Positions 1,864 through 44,140 of a stretch of 64,000 bases of DNA are shown here, in pieces (the first letter of the stretch is position 1; the number at the start of each line of letters is the position of its first letter). Location: NCBI GenBank assembly GCA_021613535.1, contig CP075495.1, positions 10,354,001-10,418,000 of the forward strand. The letters run 5' to 3'. Under the pieces are notes generated by a model, which was not told where the DNA came from, searched no databases, and worked only from the letters and a program-made list of their open reading frames with translations. This stretch comes from Adineta vaga (taxonomy: Eukaryota > Animalia > Rotifera). Made by a program: the position numbers and the translations under genes.

Positions 1864-3673
1864 TTATATTATGAATTATGATTATTCGTTCATTGTTCTC
1901 GTCATTTTCAGTCATTTCGTTGTCTAATTGAATGATTGATTTCTAGCATTAAGTCTATCATTAATCGATTATATTGTCTTTTATTTGTATATTTCTGCTG
2001 ACCTATTTTACTATTTGTATACTGAATGTATCAACAGACTTTCAATGATAGAAAACCCTTTTCTTTCTGTTTATTTATTTATTTTTTTTTTGTATATATA
2101 CATATACTTATAAATGAAAAGATATGTTTTTGCGAGTATGAATATATATTTCAATAACTATAAGTTTCTCAATCATAAAAATATGTATGTTTGAAATTGA
2201 CTGATTAACAAGGGAGAAAAAAATATCGAGGGAAATGATCTAACAATATTTTTGTCTATGTTATCAGTGATTCTTGAAAACGTGTAATCAGATATTTTTC
2301 TAGTATGAAATACCATACATACCATCTATTAAATTAAGGAATGATTATGACAACTATTAGCGGTGGATATTTTCAAAAGATTCAATTCAATGAAAACAAA
2401 AAATTTTCTTATGATTAATCATTGATCATTCATGAAAGCACTTTGTTTCAATGTTATCATTACGGCTAACACATTTGTCGTGTAAGGTTAGATAAGTTCT
2501 CACATTACTCAAATTGCTGTTAGCTATATATAAACTAGTAAAAAAGGTTTTATCATATACTATATCACAAATTATTACGTTGTAATTTAAATCATTCAAA
2601 TAGTGTTAAGTAGATTGCTTCGATTTCTTTGATAACCTTGCTAATGGAAAAGAATTGATTCTCGTATCTGATTTCTATGCTCATTCAAGGAGAATATCAA
2701 GTGAAGAAACTTTACAATAATAAAAAAATATCTTGTTAGCTGACTGATTTATTTTGATTACGACATGATCGATGAATGGATGGACCATTCATTGACTAAT
2801 ACTTATCAAATTATATCAGTCAATAAAACAGACATTTGTTTGAGATTTTATCTTAACATAATTCTTCTCAGTATGATATAAAAATTATCCGAAGATTAAT
2901 CGTTTGCTTTCTTTTTCCTTCTCCTCCTCTAATGAATCATAACAAATAATTGATGTTCAGTGTGAAAAAAAAACGAATATAGAAAATTCCATTTCAAAAT
3001 TTGATTGAATTTTTGTAATAAATATTCATTTTATCTTTGATCCATATCGAATGATTTTATGTAATCTTTATCAACTAATGATAATCTCAATATTGAAATT
3101 CGAAGTTAATTTTTTTTCTCGTATGAAAATACAGTAATCATGTTGTTGTTCATGGGTTGACTCTTATTCAATTTTAATTGTTCAATAAAAAACAAACATC
3201 AAGGAAATGACTCAATCTTTTGATCTTATCATCGAATCGAGAGAACATTTTATTTTATTCTCGTTGGATGAACAACAAACAGAATAAAAAAGTCAATTTA
3301 AGCTATTATCTCAATGTAATAACTGTTCTCTTTTAGACAACTCTAATATGTACAACGAAAGAGAGAGAACGAACAAAAAGAAGAAGAAGAAGAAAAGAAC
3401 GAGACAGAGAAGAGAAAATTTCTCTTGTTCTTACTACAACCGCATAACGCGCAACGGCAGTAGCAGCAGGAAGCAACACGAACTATATATAAGCTCATCC
3501 TATTCTCCTCCCTGTTGTTCTCTCAATGGTGGTTCATCGTACTAACATTCAAGTACTCTCTTCATTTAAGTGGACATAGTAACTAATAGTACTTCTCAAT
3601 TGTTTCTTCTTGCCATCAAACTTAAAACAACAAACAATAACAACAAAAGTATATTCATCTATATCGCTTTACA

Positions 3674-6600
3674 ATGTTCTGGCTATTGTTCATTAATCTT
3701 CTTCTCATTATTCAAACATCTTCGCTCGATTACATCAATGGTAAGATGATTAAAATTATTTGATAGTAAATGAATATTTCAGATTTTCGTATATACATGT
3801 GAGCGAGTTTGAGTAATATAAAAGTTACAATATGAAATGCAAAACTCTTCCCAAAGTCATAAATCCAATGCATATATAAATGTATATGTATGGTGATGAT
3901 GTAAACGACTATTTTACCATATACATACACACGTCGTGATAATGTTCAAGTTCAGCTGTGATTTGCATAAATCATATCATCTTTTGTATATATATATATA
4001 TACGCATGTCTTTATACAAGATGAGATATATGCCGCTGTCCATCTGTAAAACTCTTTAGCAATCTCAATTGTCATTGCCTATTTATCGATACACTTGTTG
4101 TCGCCCACTCACTTAGATTTAGACAAGAGAAATTGACATGCAATCTCAATATACATATGCAAACATATAGAGCATCTCTTCGTTAGATGTTGATTATGGT
4201 GTTGAGTTATCTTGCTGGCTATTATACGGAAGAGACAGAGAGAGAAAGCAAGATATACTTACCTTGATAGCAAGAAGAAAGGATTATGTCATATCATCAT
4301 CATCATCATCTTTATCATCATTACAAAAGATGTTAACCGGATGTTACCGAGTACAAGTATCACGGATCATCTGTCTGTAATTACCGTGGACAATGGTCAG
4401 TAATAGAAAACACAATCGCCTAATAGAGAAGCATTTCTTCTGTTTTATATAAGTAAACTATCATTATGCAAAACTGATTTCTTCTCGTTTAATCTCTAAA
4501 GAGATTTATTTTATTCAAATAAAAAAAATGAGAAATTGTGCGCACCACTTATGAACAGTGCTGTTCCCTATGTGTCACCGATTTGCATTCCATCACATAC
4601 ATGCATACATACATATATATTGGCAGACATTAGCTCATTTGGGGATGTCTGTTACGAGATGTGAGTGAATGAAGTGTACGAACTGACTAATTCGATTGGG
4701 GATAACGCGCATCATTCAGTTCTAATTCGATCTTTCAAGATAGCATTTGTCCATTTTTTTGTCATTGCTCCTCTGCATGGATGATGAGTTTCGCTTTTGT
4801 GTATTGTTCTATAATACAACAAATCAATGATGACACTTGCTTTAGGGAAAGAACTTTTCTTTTTCTTTTTTAATAAAGATAATAAAATTAAAAATTGAAA
4901 ATTTAGATGGAAATCAATCTATCATTGAAGCATTACATAGAAATGTAACAGTAACTAGTGGACAAAAAGCTATATTAACATGTACATTTGGTCATACTGA
5001 TCAAGATTTATCACTTTCATCAACATATCAGTTAATATGGATTCGACAAAATTATGCATCAAATAGTGCCGATTCTTTATTGGCACATAATCAAGACTTA
5101 TTAATATCTGATTCTCGTTTAAATGTACAACGTACTGATGTTGAATATACGTTAACAATCACCAATGTTCAGGTGGATGATGAAGGTATCTATACCTGTG
5201 AAGTAAATACTCAACCATCACAAAAAGCATTTGTTCATTTGTATGTTCAAGGTAAATGAGATTTGATTTTTTTTCTGTTCTGTAGTTCTCGATTCTCTTA
5301 AAATGCATGATCATATTCTGCACCTGCTGGAAGAGAGAGTGGAAGATGAGATTTCTCTAAACGGAAATCATCATTCCGGAGTATTGCTCATATGAATGTG
5401 TTTAATGTCTATTCTAACTGTCAAAGTTAAGCATCACGCTCGAATTGGGATGACCAACACATTTCTAACTATGATCATCTATCCAACTCTAGAGTATTTA
5501 TTAGAATTGTTTATAATAGGAAAGGAAAGAGAGAGACAGAGAATGCGAATGATTCTTCGTTTAAGTGAATGCCAGACGAATCGAAGATGAAATGAAGGCG
5601 AAAGAAAAGATGTGTGCGTGCTGCTACTTAATGTATTTAATGTTATGGTGGTTAGGACAATAAAGATAAAGAAAATCGGTAAATGATGATGATCAGGAAG
5701 CTCTGGCAAATATATGGCAGAAGTGAACTGAACCGAGAGAGTATGTTTATATTTGAACGAGTGATGACATTTTGTTGTCTACATACAATACATACACGTA
5801 TATACACATGAAACAGAAATAGAGACATACACATACGGAATTGCTTTTCAACGCCTTTCTTTACTAATATAACGTGCGACGACTATCAGCGTGTCCTTTT
5901 GTTCGTCGTCAGTCATTTTATATTGCTTAGAAGATCTTAATTTTGATGCTCAGCTGATAGACATGCACGCTAGTGATGATGTGTGCGCGATCAATTAGGA
6001 TCTGTTAGCGTGTGATTTGATTTAGATAAATATGGAAAAAAAGAAGAAGAGGAAGACAATTGTGATCATTGAAAATGATAATTAGTCATGTATTTGTTTT
6101 CATATTGATATCTTTTATAAAAGAAAAAGAAAAAAAAACGCAGAATACTATTCATAGTTGATAGTTCATTTGTTCAACAAAAATCAAAACGATTATCTCG
6201 TTTATCGATTTCTTCATGCGAATAGTATGAAAAAAGGAAATGAATTGTACATGATCTGTATGATAAAAAAGAGATAGAATGAATCTATCAGATGCTAATT
6301 TGTTCTAATCAAAATTCTAGATGACATTCTTTTTTCCCCTTCTATGTATGTTATTAATCGACGTTAAGTAATCAGTTATGCTAGAATGATTGAATTAATG
6401 CGTGCACTTTCTAAGTTGCGATGGCGAATAGATTGAAAACATATGAAAACGTTTTTTTTTTCGTTGAATTATTACACAGATGTAGTTAACTAACTGAAGA
6501 TAATTTAAAACTGTCATGAAAAATTGTTTGTTAACTCACGCCCTCAAATATTTTCATCGTTTTTAGTCGATTGTTGACTAAATGTAATTGGTTGAAATCT

Positions 6601-40112: not shown

Positions 40113-40600
40113 AGATATGCTTATCAAATTTCCAGGTGTTTTCTTTTCTCATTCCATATAAACGACACAAATGACAATTTTCTCTTTGATATTTATCCAT
40201 ATTATTGCTTTGTCAAATTATAATCCTTTAAGAATGCTTATTTTATTTCTATTTCTCATATATATATATCGAACTTTTCTTGTTTTTGCTTATTTGTATA
40301 TCTGTATAGTTGGTTCAGTACATATCATTGATCAAATACATATACATATATACAAACAAAATTCTTTCGTTTGTTTTGTGCAATGTTTCGAGAGCAAACC
40401 TTTGATATTGTCGAATGAGTATACTAAAATTTTCAGTTTTTAATTCGAGTGATTTAAAGAACAAGTTTTTGTTTATGTATATGTTTTTCAATATTTGTTT
40501 TATTAAACATCGTGATATCTTGTTTTCTTTATTTACACCCGACAAAGATAAATATAATCAATAGTTCATGAAAAAAAAAGATTATTCTTTCTCTTTCCAG

Positions 40601-41350
40601 ATGTTGAAAGTTTTGTCACTTGTTAGATTGGTGAATCCAAATGTTTTAGCCTCATCAAAAAGATTATTTCATTTAACACAGACAGTGGGATTGAAGAAAA
40701 GTAAGACGAAACATATCATGTGGAATGACTAAACTTCTGATTCATAGATATATCGATAGTAATAGGACATGATTTTCATAAATAATAGAATCTTATCATC
40801 TTACAAAAGCATTCAACTTTCATTTCATTTTAGTTACGGAAAAAGTTGAAGGCAATGTGATAACAGTAAGTTTTACTGAAAATGATCTTGATTAATGATT
40901 GTTTTTTGTCTAGTACGAAGGAGAATATATTAATGATAATGAAAAGAATGTTTTAAAATTATCCGGACCTGAAGAAGTTTGTATTTGGTGTAAATTTGAT
41001 CGTCGATCGATTCATATTCAACATACAGTATGTGAAGAAACGACACAAAAGTTTTCAATTCTTTTTTTCTTATCTTTAAGGATGTTCTCGTTCTTCGACA
41101 ATATCTTCGAAAAGATGGTACAATTCTTCCTCCTGAAATAACTGGTCTATGTCCAAAACAGAATGATAAATTACATACATTAATTCGTCAAGCTCGAATG
41201 ACTGGTTTAATTTCATATCCAACTGTCGCTGTTACAAAACGTGAACCACTTCTTGTTGATCCAACATTAAGACCTGAATTTGAACAATATAATTCATATT
41301 GGGAGAAATATGAAGTGTTAAAAAAGAGAGATCACTATCTTGGACCATAA
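40601..41350 (+). CDS. MRPS18A: Mitochondrial ribosomal protein S18A (mL66), 4 exons
   Basis: Basic presequence-like N-terminus, a CIWC zinc motif, and IQHTDVLVLRQYLRKDGTILPPEITGLCPKQ..LIRQARMTGLI, typical of bS18-family mL66. Confidence 0.85.
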
Positions 41351-41465
41351 ATTTTGTTTAGATTTGTTTGTTTTCAAATAAAAGATAGGCTTATTTTCAA
41401 GATAAATGAAAAGATTCGTTATAATTTTGAAAATGAAATGAGTTTATTGTTTTTAGTATTCGAAA

Positions 41466-42435
41466 ATGCTTTCGACTTGGATTGATATATCAAATTTGAA
41501 AAAACCATTGAAATTCAATGAATTATCAATTGATTTTAATCCTGAGTTATATAATGCTAAACCATTAACGGATGATATACAGAAAAAGTTAGATGAAAGA
41601 TGGAATCAATTGTTAAATGAGACGAAACCAGGACGAATTCTATATAATGAATCCAAATTTCGTCTGCATTCAATTCAAACGAAAATAATTGATGAAAATG
41701 CTATGGAATTTGTACTTAATCTTGGTCTAACTGATTACAAATCATTTATTTGTACACAACAACAAAATTTACCTGATGATATACGTCAACATATAACTGA
41801 AGATCATCTATCACATCCTCTTGGTGTCGGTTGTCTTCTTATAACATCAGATGATTGCATTGTTTTGATTAAACGAAATTCGAATTGCGTTGATTCACCT
41901 AATCTATATGATTTACCTGGTGGTCATCCAGAACCAAAGTAAGAATGAAATATAATTCAAAAAAGACTTTATTATCTTACTCATTGTTTTAGAAATGCAA
42001 AATCCTATTCAAACGAAGATATTATTGAAGAAATTCGTTTATCAACAATGGCAGAATGTGTTGATGAAACAAATGTAGATCGAAATACACTTCTCGTTGA
42101 TTCATTCTTTTTTATTCTAATTATTACACGGAATTTAAATCAACATGGTCGACCTGCTATAGAATCTTGTCTTAGGTATAACTGAAATTCTTTGAAAAAT
42201 AATAAAAATGATTAAACATCTCATACGATTATTTTAATTTAGAACATCAATGTCATCGAATGAATTACAACAACGTTATAATCTTCAAACACATATTGAA
42301 GCATTTGAATCGACTGAATTAAAATTTTGGCCTTTAGATAAAATTTCTGATCTTTTAAATTCTTCTCAAACATTAATTTCAATTACACCAGCTTGTCATG
42401 CAACTTTAACAGCCTATTCACGTTTATTGTTTTAG
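41466..42435 (+). CDS. NUDT22: Nudix hydrolase NUDT22 (UDP-glucose pyrophosphatase-like), 3 exons
   Basis: Motifs LYNESKFRLHS, LNLGLTDYKSFICT, HLSHPLGVGCLLITSDD, DLPGGHPEP, GRP and EAFES. Confidence 0.9.
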
Positions 42436-43778
42436 ATGTATCATTTAAGTACACAATATCACGAATGGTTATTTACAGTTGAACAATTAAAAGAATTACG
42501 TATGAAAAGTAATTCGGAATATGTTCAAACACATGTATGTTACATAGATTTTAATTGAAGCCGTTTTATTTCATCAATAAAATAGACTGCACAAGATTGT
42601 TTGACAGTCGATGAAGAAGCTATGGTTTTACGTTATTATGAAATACAATTGAAAGATTTTTGTGAGAAATTCAAACCATCCATGACAAAAATATCAATCG
42701 TATGTTGTTGTTATGCTCAATTAAAATCTATTTGTTTCTCTCTTTTCAAGGCTGTTGCTATGCAATATTTCAAACGATTTTATCTAAATAATTCAGTGAT
42801 GGATTATCATCCAAGAGATATTTAGTAAAAAGAAAAAAACGAATTGTTATTTTTGTTTTTTGATAAAATTCTTTTTCTTATGTTTAGTTTAATTTGTGTA
42901 TATTTAACTAGTAAAACAGAAGAATTAAGAATATCAATGCGAGATTTTCTTGCGAATATCAAAGATAGTACAAATCTTGATCATACAGCTGATATTCTTT
43001 TATCATATGAATTATTATTAATTGAAAAAATTCATTTTCAACTTGTTATCCATACTGCACATAGACCATTCGAAGGTTTGATTATTGATTTGAAGGTAAG
43101 AATAAGAAAAAAAACAAAAACATTTATCATTTATTTATTTGTTATGCATCTAGACTCATTACTTACGTGATAATGTGAATGATGCCGAACGACTACGTGT
43201 AACTGGTTATGAATTTCTTGATAAAACTTTATTAACTGATGTTTATTTTCTATTTCCACCCTCACAAGTAAAATATCTTCATATTCTTTCGAGAAAGAGA
43301 GAGAAAAAAACATACATGTATTTTTTGCTTTCATTTGTACTTAGATTGCACTTACAGCATTAGTATTTGCTTCTGTAAAAGCAGGAGTCAATATTGATGA
43401 ATATATTCTTAAACATATTTATGGTTCATTAGAATCAGATCAAATGCAGAAAATTAAAGAAACAATTCGATGTAAATATTCTTTTGTTCCATTTTGAATT
43501 ATTAGCTCAATCATATATTTCTTTCTTTCTTTCTTCAGTAATTGCAAGTGTTGTTAATGCACCAACAAAATTTAAGAAAAGTGAGGTGAAACAAATGGTC
43601 GACAAATTAGAGAAATGTTATAACACTAATAATGATCCACGTACAGATGAATATAAAAAGAAACGTTTAGAACAATTTCAAGCAGTCACTGATTATGAAG
43701 CAAGACATTTGGTAAATATTTTTCGAGATTTTTCATTATGGATTATATGTATATTTTTGTTTTTTCTTTTAGCCATAA
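42436..43778 (+). CDS. CCNH: Cyclin H (CAK/TFIIH subunit), multi-exon
   Basis: Motifs [82 protein letters not shown] and [16 protein letters not shown]. Confidence 0.95.
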
Positions 43779-44140
43779 TGTTATCTATTATTGTCGAGCA
43801 TCTGTTATATAAAAGTATTCTTTTATCTTTGAAATCTGAAGAAAGGAAATAAATCATCGAAATTAAAACATACAAATATTTCTTTCTTTTTTAACGATAT
43901 AAATAAAATGACGAAAACAAATATTTCGTTGTCAAGAAATAAAATATTCTTGTTTAAAAAGAAAAGCAAGCAAGCAAGCAAACAAACAAACAAACAAGCA
44001 AACATTCATATGAGCAGATAAAGCAACAAAAAGAAAGAAAGTGTGATTTATTTTCACTTGCATAAATAAGCAATAATATTAACATGGAAATTGCATCACA
44101 TATTAATACAATAATTGCTGACGAAAGAAAAAAGAGTTAT

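Follow-up and report, generated by a model that had tools for sequence, protein, structure and literature searches.

A zero-gap junction between NUDT22 and cyclin H in Adineta vaga, a bdelloid rotifer, and its possible place in a spliced-leader operon

How are two separate proteins obtained from genes that leave no base between them? The question is raised by a stretch of 64,000 nt from the bdelloid rotifer Adineta vaga (assembly GCA_021613535.1, contig CP075495.1, positions 10,354,001–10,418,000; hereafter the window, whose own numbering is used throughout), in which the stop codon of NUDT22 is followed directly, and in the same frame, by the start codon of the cyclin H gene CCNH. In this work the last two bases of that stop codon were considered as a possible acceptor site for the rotifer spliced leader (SL), and this reading was weighed against translational and transcriptional alternatives. 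The junction is conserved among bdelloids and is crossed by spliced RNA contigs, and a retrogene in Rotaria points to an RNA that was cut at exactly this bond; together with an MRPS18A-like gene upstream, the pair may form a gapless operon of the kind described in Ciona.

The junction and its conservation

The sequence at positions 42421–42445 is CGT TTA TTG TTT TAG ATG TAT CAT T, the letters around the junction being TTGTTTTAG followed by ATGTAT. A preliminary description, made from the sequence alone, had reported that the two genes adjoin in frame and without a gap, and this was borne out. The RNA evidence for A. vaga consists of assembled contigs of four runs (X1, X5, X13 and X14), not raw reads; these contigs show neither insertion nor deletion at the junction, and the collapsed assembly spacer named as a danger in the same description is therefore excluded. 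The features at the junction are as follows.

41466–42435, plus strand: NUDT22 coding sequence (CDS), 282 aa, with exons 41466–41938, 41993–42175 and 42243–42435, the last including the TAG
42436–43778, plus strand: CCNH CDS, 304 aa, single copy, last codon TAA
42433–42438, plus strand: zero-gap junction TAG/ATG, with the NUDT22 TAG at 42433–42435 and the CCNH ATG at 42436–42438 in the same frame
42406–42435, plus strand: 3' splice-site-like module in the last NUDT22 codons (TTAAC at 42406–42410, a T-rich tract and the AG of the stop codon)

All introns of both genes were backed by GT..AG joints in the RNA contigs, those of NUDT22 lying at 41938>41993 and 42171>42239 (cut +4). The eight CCNH exons (42436–42534, 42586–42699, 42751–42824, 42888–43095, 43154–43267, 43345–43471, 43539–43711 and 43773–43778; intron 1 at 42535–42585) give a protein of a length that agrees with the 304–305 aa of the bdelloid CCNH proteins P0184 and P0186. 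The window is AT-rich (26–35 % GC) with introns of 50–80 nt, and no Rfam match was found in it.

Both reading frames were tested for family membership, and both gene names given in the preliminary description proved correct. The A. vaga exons were searched singly against PDB, with full-length comparisons made through natural RNA contigs of relatives; NUDT22 (UDP-glucose/galactose pyrophosphatase) exon 1 matched human NUDT22 structures at 2.5e-17 and CCNH exon 4 matched human cyclin H at 3.4e-13. Naming the genes by Pfam on single exons was too weak and was replaced by these exon-wise searches; on the bdelloid CCNH orthologues Pfam returned Cyclin_N and Cyclin_C_2. CCNH exon 1, read from its initial Met-Tyr-His, aligned with yeast Ccl1 at the N-terminus, which identifies the ATG at 42436 as the orthologous cyclin H start. 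The nearest proteins were those of Rotaria species. DNA and protein searches of the 100.8-Mb, six-piece genome revealed no second copy (homoeologue) of the pair besides the locus itself. With only one copy of each gene, an essential cyclin has to be expressed from this layout.

The preliminary description had suggested checking whether TAGATG recurs in related genomes, and it does. An exact-pattern scan of JGI contigs for TAG followed by ATGTATCAT returned nine true bdelloid contigs and one chance match, and the junction was kept in at least nine bdelloid lineages, with the frames in register in every one. It was also present in Rotaria sordida genomic DNA and in Logan RNA contigs of two other bdelloids; given this recurrence in R. 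sordida DNA and in Logan and JGI contigs, the junction is neither chance nor an assembly artefact. The branch-like TTAAC stands at −26 in A. vaga and 26–27 nt upstream across ten lineages, always followed by a T-rich tract and TAG, and in all ten the C-terminus of NUDT22 reads ...Y-x-R/H-L-F/L-F-stop. Judged from its letters, this succession of TTAAC, T-tract and AG is the layout of a 3' splice site, as the preliminary description had held. Outside the bdelloids, animal CCNH transcripts from four Logan runs (L029–L032; 46 % identical to the bdelloid ones) carried an ordinary short leader and lacked NUDT22 within 273 nt upstream, and the gapless pair may thus be limited to bdelloids.

Public models of Rotaria socialis (P0185, 519 aa) and R. 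sordida (P0187, 520 aa; L017:3001–8180) fuse NUDT22 and cyclin H. One of them introduces a spurious intron of 36 nt whose 3' limit is the AG of the stop codon, and the other skips the last NUDT22 exon; both fusions are annotation artefacts of the gapless layout. A metatranscriptome contig (L028:1–996) carried the leader, with 22 of its 23 bases present, followed by TATATATAA and NUDT22 (281 aa). Behind its TAG stands a decayed CCNH start (ATA TAT CAT TTA AGG...) and the message runs at least 119 nt past the stop; from its sequence, this looks like a second copy of the pair with a dead cyclin H.

RNA evidence at the junction

The published rotifer SL, of 23 nt, is GGCTTATTACAACTTACCAAGAG (PMC3795323). 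The end of this leader followed by GT occurred in 53 copies in the genome, against none for a control pattern, so that A. vaga has genes for SL RNA. Its use at NUDT22 was visible in the contigs, which also defined the 3' limit of the pair.

41441–41456, plus strand: NUDT22 SL trans-splice acceptor GTTTATTGTTTTTAG, joined at 41456/41457, 9 nt before the ATG
43902–43913, plus strand: CCNH AATAAA and the end of the longest junction-crossing contig (X1 record 2)

Contigs of runs X13 and X5 carried the loose ends AACTTACCAAG and CTTACCAAG before 41455, the AG being common to the leader and the acceptor. NUDT22 was also the gene of the cluster that carried the leader in relatives, with a 22-nt SL on the L028 message and CAAGAG, the SL tail, on L013. 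The module at the CCNH junction and the proven NUDT22 acceptor about 1 kb upstream agree almost letter for letter (GTTTATTGTTTTAG and GTTTATTGTTTTTAG). In L026 the NUDT22 ATG stands directly at its acceptor.

In three of the four A. vaga runs, from three studies (X1, X13 and X14), a single contig of 1.8–1.9 kb ran from the SL remnant at 41455 through 42435/42436 unchanged, with every intron of both genes removed, including CCNH intron 1, and ended near the AATAAA at 43902; the longest (X1 record 2, 1914 nt) reached to about 43913. In run X5 the two genes lay on separate contigs, with a hole at 42371–42510. Protein-guided retrieval from two Logan runs gave contigs holding NUDT22 and CCNH with zero bases between them (L011 and L012), and gapless contigs were also found in one further Logan run and two JGI samples (L013, L014 and L015), of which L013 and L014 start with CAAGAG. 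A further spliced contig over the junction was L023. In all junction-crossing contigs CCNH intron 1 was gone and the sequence continued through the whole CCNH message, and the earlier proposal is thus supported in part, in that RNA crosses the junction at the level of contigs. The interval between MRPS18A and NUDT22 (41416–41454) gave a different picture: no contig covered it in any of the four runs, though MRPS18A was the deeper gene, and the bin depths there were explained by flanking contigs. Ordinary unprocessed precursor must therefore lie below the assembly threshold, and a stable junction-crossing RNA is the simplest reading of the bridging contigs.

Evidence for an RNA that ended at the junction came from a different source. 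An intronless second NUDT22 with no CCNH behind it was present in R. sordida, Rotaria sp. Silwood2 and two metagenome lineages (proteins P0001 and P0151–P0153; loci L010, L033 and L035/36).

L010:4016–4909; L033 and L035 at 2950–3865: intronless NUDT22 retrogene, open reading frame (ORF) intact, 283 aa

With its ORF intact, the retrogene is probably functional. The retrogenes formed one clade nested among the CCNH-linked NUDT22 copies (support 97/97). The best match to the 23-nt SL in the whole locus lies 7 nt before the retrogene ATG (15/23 and unique among 10,568 positions in L010; 14/23 and tied top of 13,660 positions in L033), and when the three orthologues were aligned with a real SL-NUDT22 RNA (L028), most SL positions were recovered jointly. 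At the other end, homology to the parent gene stops at TAG(A) and is followed in the three orthologues by an A-run: ACAAAAAAAAAC, AAATAAAAAC or AAACAAAAAT. A 9-nt repeat, AACTCATCA, flanking the L010 retrogene was considered as a target-site duplication and rejected, its 5' copy falling inside the SL-derived stretch once the orthologues were aligned. The structure is, on this indirect evidence, that of a retrocopy of an SL-capped, monocistronic NUDT22 mRNA with poly(A) from the stop codon. Such a fossil of a trans-spliced message in DNA, its leader by now decayed, is rare. The 3' end of the retrogene corresponds to the same bond that trans-splicing to CCNH would cut, and no other observation indicates that cleavage takes place there at all.

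Two hexamers downstream of the stop were examined as alternative 3' ends of NUDT22.

42486–42491, plus strand: ATTAAA, candidate poly(A) signal in CCNH exon 1, 51 nt past the NUDT22 stop
42576–42581, plus strand: AATAAA in CCNH intron 1, +141 from the NUDT22 stop

According to the preliminary description, NUDT22 mRNA would end at the intron-1 AATAAA and have a 3' UTR (untranslated region) made of CCNH exon 1 and intron 1. That hexamer does lie inside CCNH intron 1, but the ATTAAA precedes it. As a conserved signal it had to be rejected, being missing in four of seven bdelloid lineages (L016, L018, L020 and L025), and the intron that holds it was spliced out of the crossing contigs. The proposed 3' UTR is not supported either, for the sole 3'-end evidence, the retrogene, puts poly(A) right after the TAG. 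The ATTAAA occurred in six of seven lineages and was missing in L013 and L025; its letters are dictated by conserved LKEL codons. No poly(A) loose end was seen at 42436–42700 in the four A. vaga runs.

Accounts of the junction

The reading we prefer, and to which we give about an even chance, is that of a Ciona-type gapless SL operon, MRPS18A > NUDT22 > CCNH, whose last junction allows two RNA fates. A single precursor would be transcribed from upstream of MRPS18A and the leader joined at 41456/41457, after which the NUDT22-CCNH part could take either course. In the first, the two genes would stay joined, all introns would be removed and the RNA would end at the CCNH poly(A) site; this SL-capped dicistronic RNA would be abundant and could serve as NUDT22 mRNA, since NUDT22 is its first reading frame. 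In the second, the leader would be joined at UAG/AUG, with the final AG of the NUDT22 stop codon as acceptor. The resulting CCNH mRNA would have the 23-nt leader as its whole 5' UTR, with G at −3 of the AUG, and the upstream piece would end exactly at UAG; polyadenylation there would give a NUDT22 mRNA with no 3' UTR. We infer the use of the CCNH acceptor, the single dicistronic molecule and the making of the upstream 3' end.

The second fate can be carried one step further, in a form that we consider possible although unlikely. The outron freed when the leader joins the CCNH AUG would itself be a complete SL-capped NUDT22 mRNA ending UAG-OH, which would be debranched and polyadenylated there. 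If this were true, one precursor would yield both mRNAs, and there would be, in an animal, a nuclear mRNA that lacks a cleavage/polyadenylation signal and whose 3' UTR has zero length; it is this very molecule that the Rotaria retrogene would have preserved as DNA.

Several observations weigh against the operon. In the four A. vaga runs no contig had the SL on the CCNH ATG and no loose end was seen at 42436. The join, which would read as the SL tail followed by ATGTATCATTTAAG, was sought in the JGI contigs by an exact-pattern scan for CAAGAG followed by ATGTATCAT, which found none, against nine true TAG/ATG matches, and two protein searches of the protein collection returned no CCNH ORF with an SL-encoded extension. 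In de Bruijn assemblers, tip clipping discards a leader tip of 21 nt where it forks from a longer path. Because short tips are clipped in this way, the absence of SL-CCNH contigs is weak evidence, and it is precisely because no competing path exists at NUDT22 that the leader survives there. The same four runs contained no poly(A) loose end at 42435, and the 30 nt before the NUDT22 stop hold no AATAAA-like signal. An RNA of this dicistronic form, which has a tail of 1.4 kb with seven exon junctions past its first stop, would be expected to attract nonsense-mediated decay. Furthermore, a contig over two genes does not prove one molecule, and the retrogene fossil is from the Rotaria lineage, not from A. 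vaga. Cis-splicing that would join the donor of NUDT22 exon 2 to the AG at the junction was also considered and rejected, as no such RNA joint was found and the frame would be shifted.

Of the alternatives, termination-reinitiation fares best, and we regard it as unlikely. It takes the SL-NUDT22-CCNH RNA as the sole mature product, on which ribosomes stopping at UAG would restart at the adjacent AUG. This would accommodate three facts: each contig with a CCNH 5' end also holds NUDT22 (four species, about ten data sets), the SL was never seen on CCNH in contigs, JGI scan or ORF search, and no lineage has any base between stop and start. Reinitiation is, however, normally very inefficient after a frame of 282 codons, yet cyclin H is essential and single copy. 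The last 120 nt of NUDT22 contained no TGGGA, the core of the UGGGA (TURBS-type) motif, in any of 10 lineages, a test that covers the UGGGA-type element, and elements of other kinds may occur. No extra synonymous-site conservation was detected near the NUDT22 stop, and in the dicistronic context U stands at −3 of the AUG. The retrogene fossil, moreover, shows that RNA cleaved precisely at this bond was once made.

A 3' end of NUDT22 mRNA inside CCNH, at the ATTAAA (+51) or the AATAAA (+141), is the next alternative and seems to us quite unlikely. CCNH would still be produced by SL splicing at the stop, and the bridging contigs would be assembler merges, a suggestion helped by the fact that contigs are unable to prove a single molecule. 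Both hexamers are present in A. vaga and the first is widespread; the X5 CCNH contig begins at 42511, about 20 nt past the ATTAAA, and the L028 message continues beyond its stop where CCNH is dead. Against this stand the points already made on these hexamers, namely the patchy occurrence of the AATAAA, the coding constraint on the ATTAAA and its loss in two lineages, the lack of poly(A) loose ends downstream of the junction and the removal of intron 1 from all bridging contigs.

We see a slim chance that the pair consists of two ordinary genes, with a CCNH promoter within the NUDT22 gene body and the crossing RNA a functionless read-through from NUDT22. The separate X5 contigs, with depths of 20 and 35, and the very compact nature of bdelloid genomes would fit such a promoter. 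Its start site would, however, fall in NUDT22 coding sequence, the ATG being the first base after the stop, and the account has to contend with a junction frozen in all lineages, an intact acceptor module and an upstream junction of the same run that is demonstrably resolved by SL.

Readthrough of the UAG to give a NUDT22-cyclin H fusion protein is very improbable. The conserved register of the frames would suit it, but any zero gap brings such a register about by itself. No readthrough context of the form UAG-AUG-U is known to us, the conserved Met-Tyr-His start fits the cyclin H/Ccl1 N-terminus of other eukaryotes, and in the retrogene and in L028 NUDT22 functions with no CCNH.

Surroundings of the pair and comparison with known systems

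The NUDT22-CCNH pair lies at the end of a same-strand run, MRPS18A > NUDT22 > CCNH, and this order was found in every genomic locus fetched.

40601–41350, plus strand: MRPS18A-like gene, first of the run, with three introns and the stop TAA at 41348–41350
41378–41406, plus strand: MRPS18A AATAAA (41378–41383) and poly(A) addition site (41406), with an A11 loose end behind 41406 in run X5

The identity of the first gene is based on Pfam Ribosomal_S18 in the upstream neighbour in R. sordida, and its intron joints in the RNA contigs were 40700>40834, 40865>40914 and 41027>41081. Its poly(A) tail begins at 41406, 23 nt past the AATAAA. The MRPS18A ATG at 40601 also adjoins an acceptor (ttccag/ATG). 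RNA contigs reach about 35 nt upstream of this ATG with no leader seen (window 40560–40603), pointing to an ordinary promoter close to 40565 as the start of the run's first gene. In the first MRPS18A intron (133 nt, 40700–40834) a cluster of variant letters was seen in low-depth contigs, with X13 loose ends at 40700 and 40748; these could stem from two alleles whose RNA was not spliced, or from a small exon used alternatively.

At the other end, a contig in three runs departs from the window at 43491, in CCNH intron 6, and continues with 93 unrelated letters, and an X14 piece (43212–43535) is flanked on each side by 255 foreign letters; a structural allele, a chimeric contig or another locus could be the source. 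CCNH converges with the next gene, on the minus strand, the 3' ends being only about 10 nt apart (window 43913–44020). One X5 contig spans both CCNH and this gene, and a (GCAA/ACAA)n microsatellite lies at 43954–44011.

The preliminary description had likened the junction to C. elegans SL1-type operons, an apt comparison that extends to Ciona. In the Ciona operons that lack intercistronic DNA, poly(A) of the upstream gene begins at ...AG, AATAAA is missing and dicistronic cDNAs occur in spliced form; Satou et al. [quoted passage not shown] The rotifer junction may match four of the five defining features of this kind. The upstream gene adjoins the putative downstream trans-splice acceptor, no AATAAA stands before the boundary and spliced dicistronic RNA is seen at contig level; upstream poly(A) from ...AG is indicated indirectly, by the Rotaria retrogene. 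One SL type is used, as in Ciona intestinalis. For the fifth feature, an SL on the downstream gene, Ciona provides documented cases, whereas no contig has it here. The two systems differ in other respects. Ciona belongs to a different phylum from the rotifers, and its boundary comes after a 3' UTR; in the rotifer the AG is part of the stop codon and the next base begins the AUG, which would leave no gene-specific UTR on either side.

In C. elegans SL1-type operons the upstream poly(A) site adjoins the downstream trans-splice site, as the upstream end would here, and mutually exclusive processing was proposed (cited in PMC1488885 and PMC7986045). These operons keep a canonical AAUAAA and a 3' UTR (PMC1488885), unlike the rotifer junction, which has no such signal within 30 nt of the stop. 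The viral termination-reinitiation cassettes, such as the UAAUG of influenza B M1/BM2 and of caliciviruses (PMC3035654, PMC10275272), also have a stop touching a start on an RNA that holds both frames. They require an upstream ribosome-tethering element, however, and the simple UGGGA motif is missing at the rotifer junction; here, moreover, the upstream frame is a normal cellular gene and trans-splicing is available as an alternative.

According to Wenzel et al. (2021, PMC7986045), no operons had been reported in rotifers, and no later report was found in the literature searched. The junction would be the tightest possible form of a gapless operon, with stop, putative acceptor and start within six bases, and bdelloids have kept this sharing throughout their evolution at the gene for an essential cyclin of the cell cycle and of transcription. 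It provides a test bed for the question, posed by Ciona, of how the upstream 3' end arises and whether each mRNA excludes the other, and it raises the further question of whether a dicistronic RNA that persists can function as an mRNA in animals. Given the false fusions of 519–520 aa in Rotaria, the annotation of bdelloid genomes needs SL- and operon-aware models.

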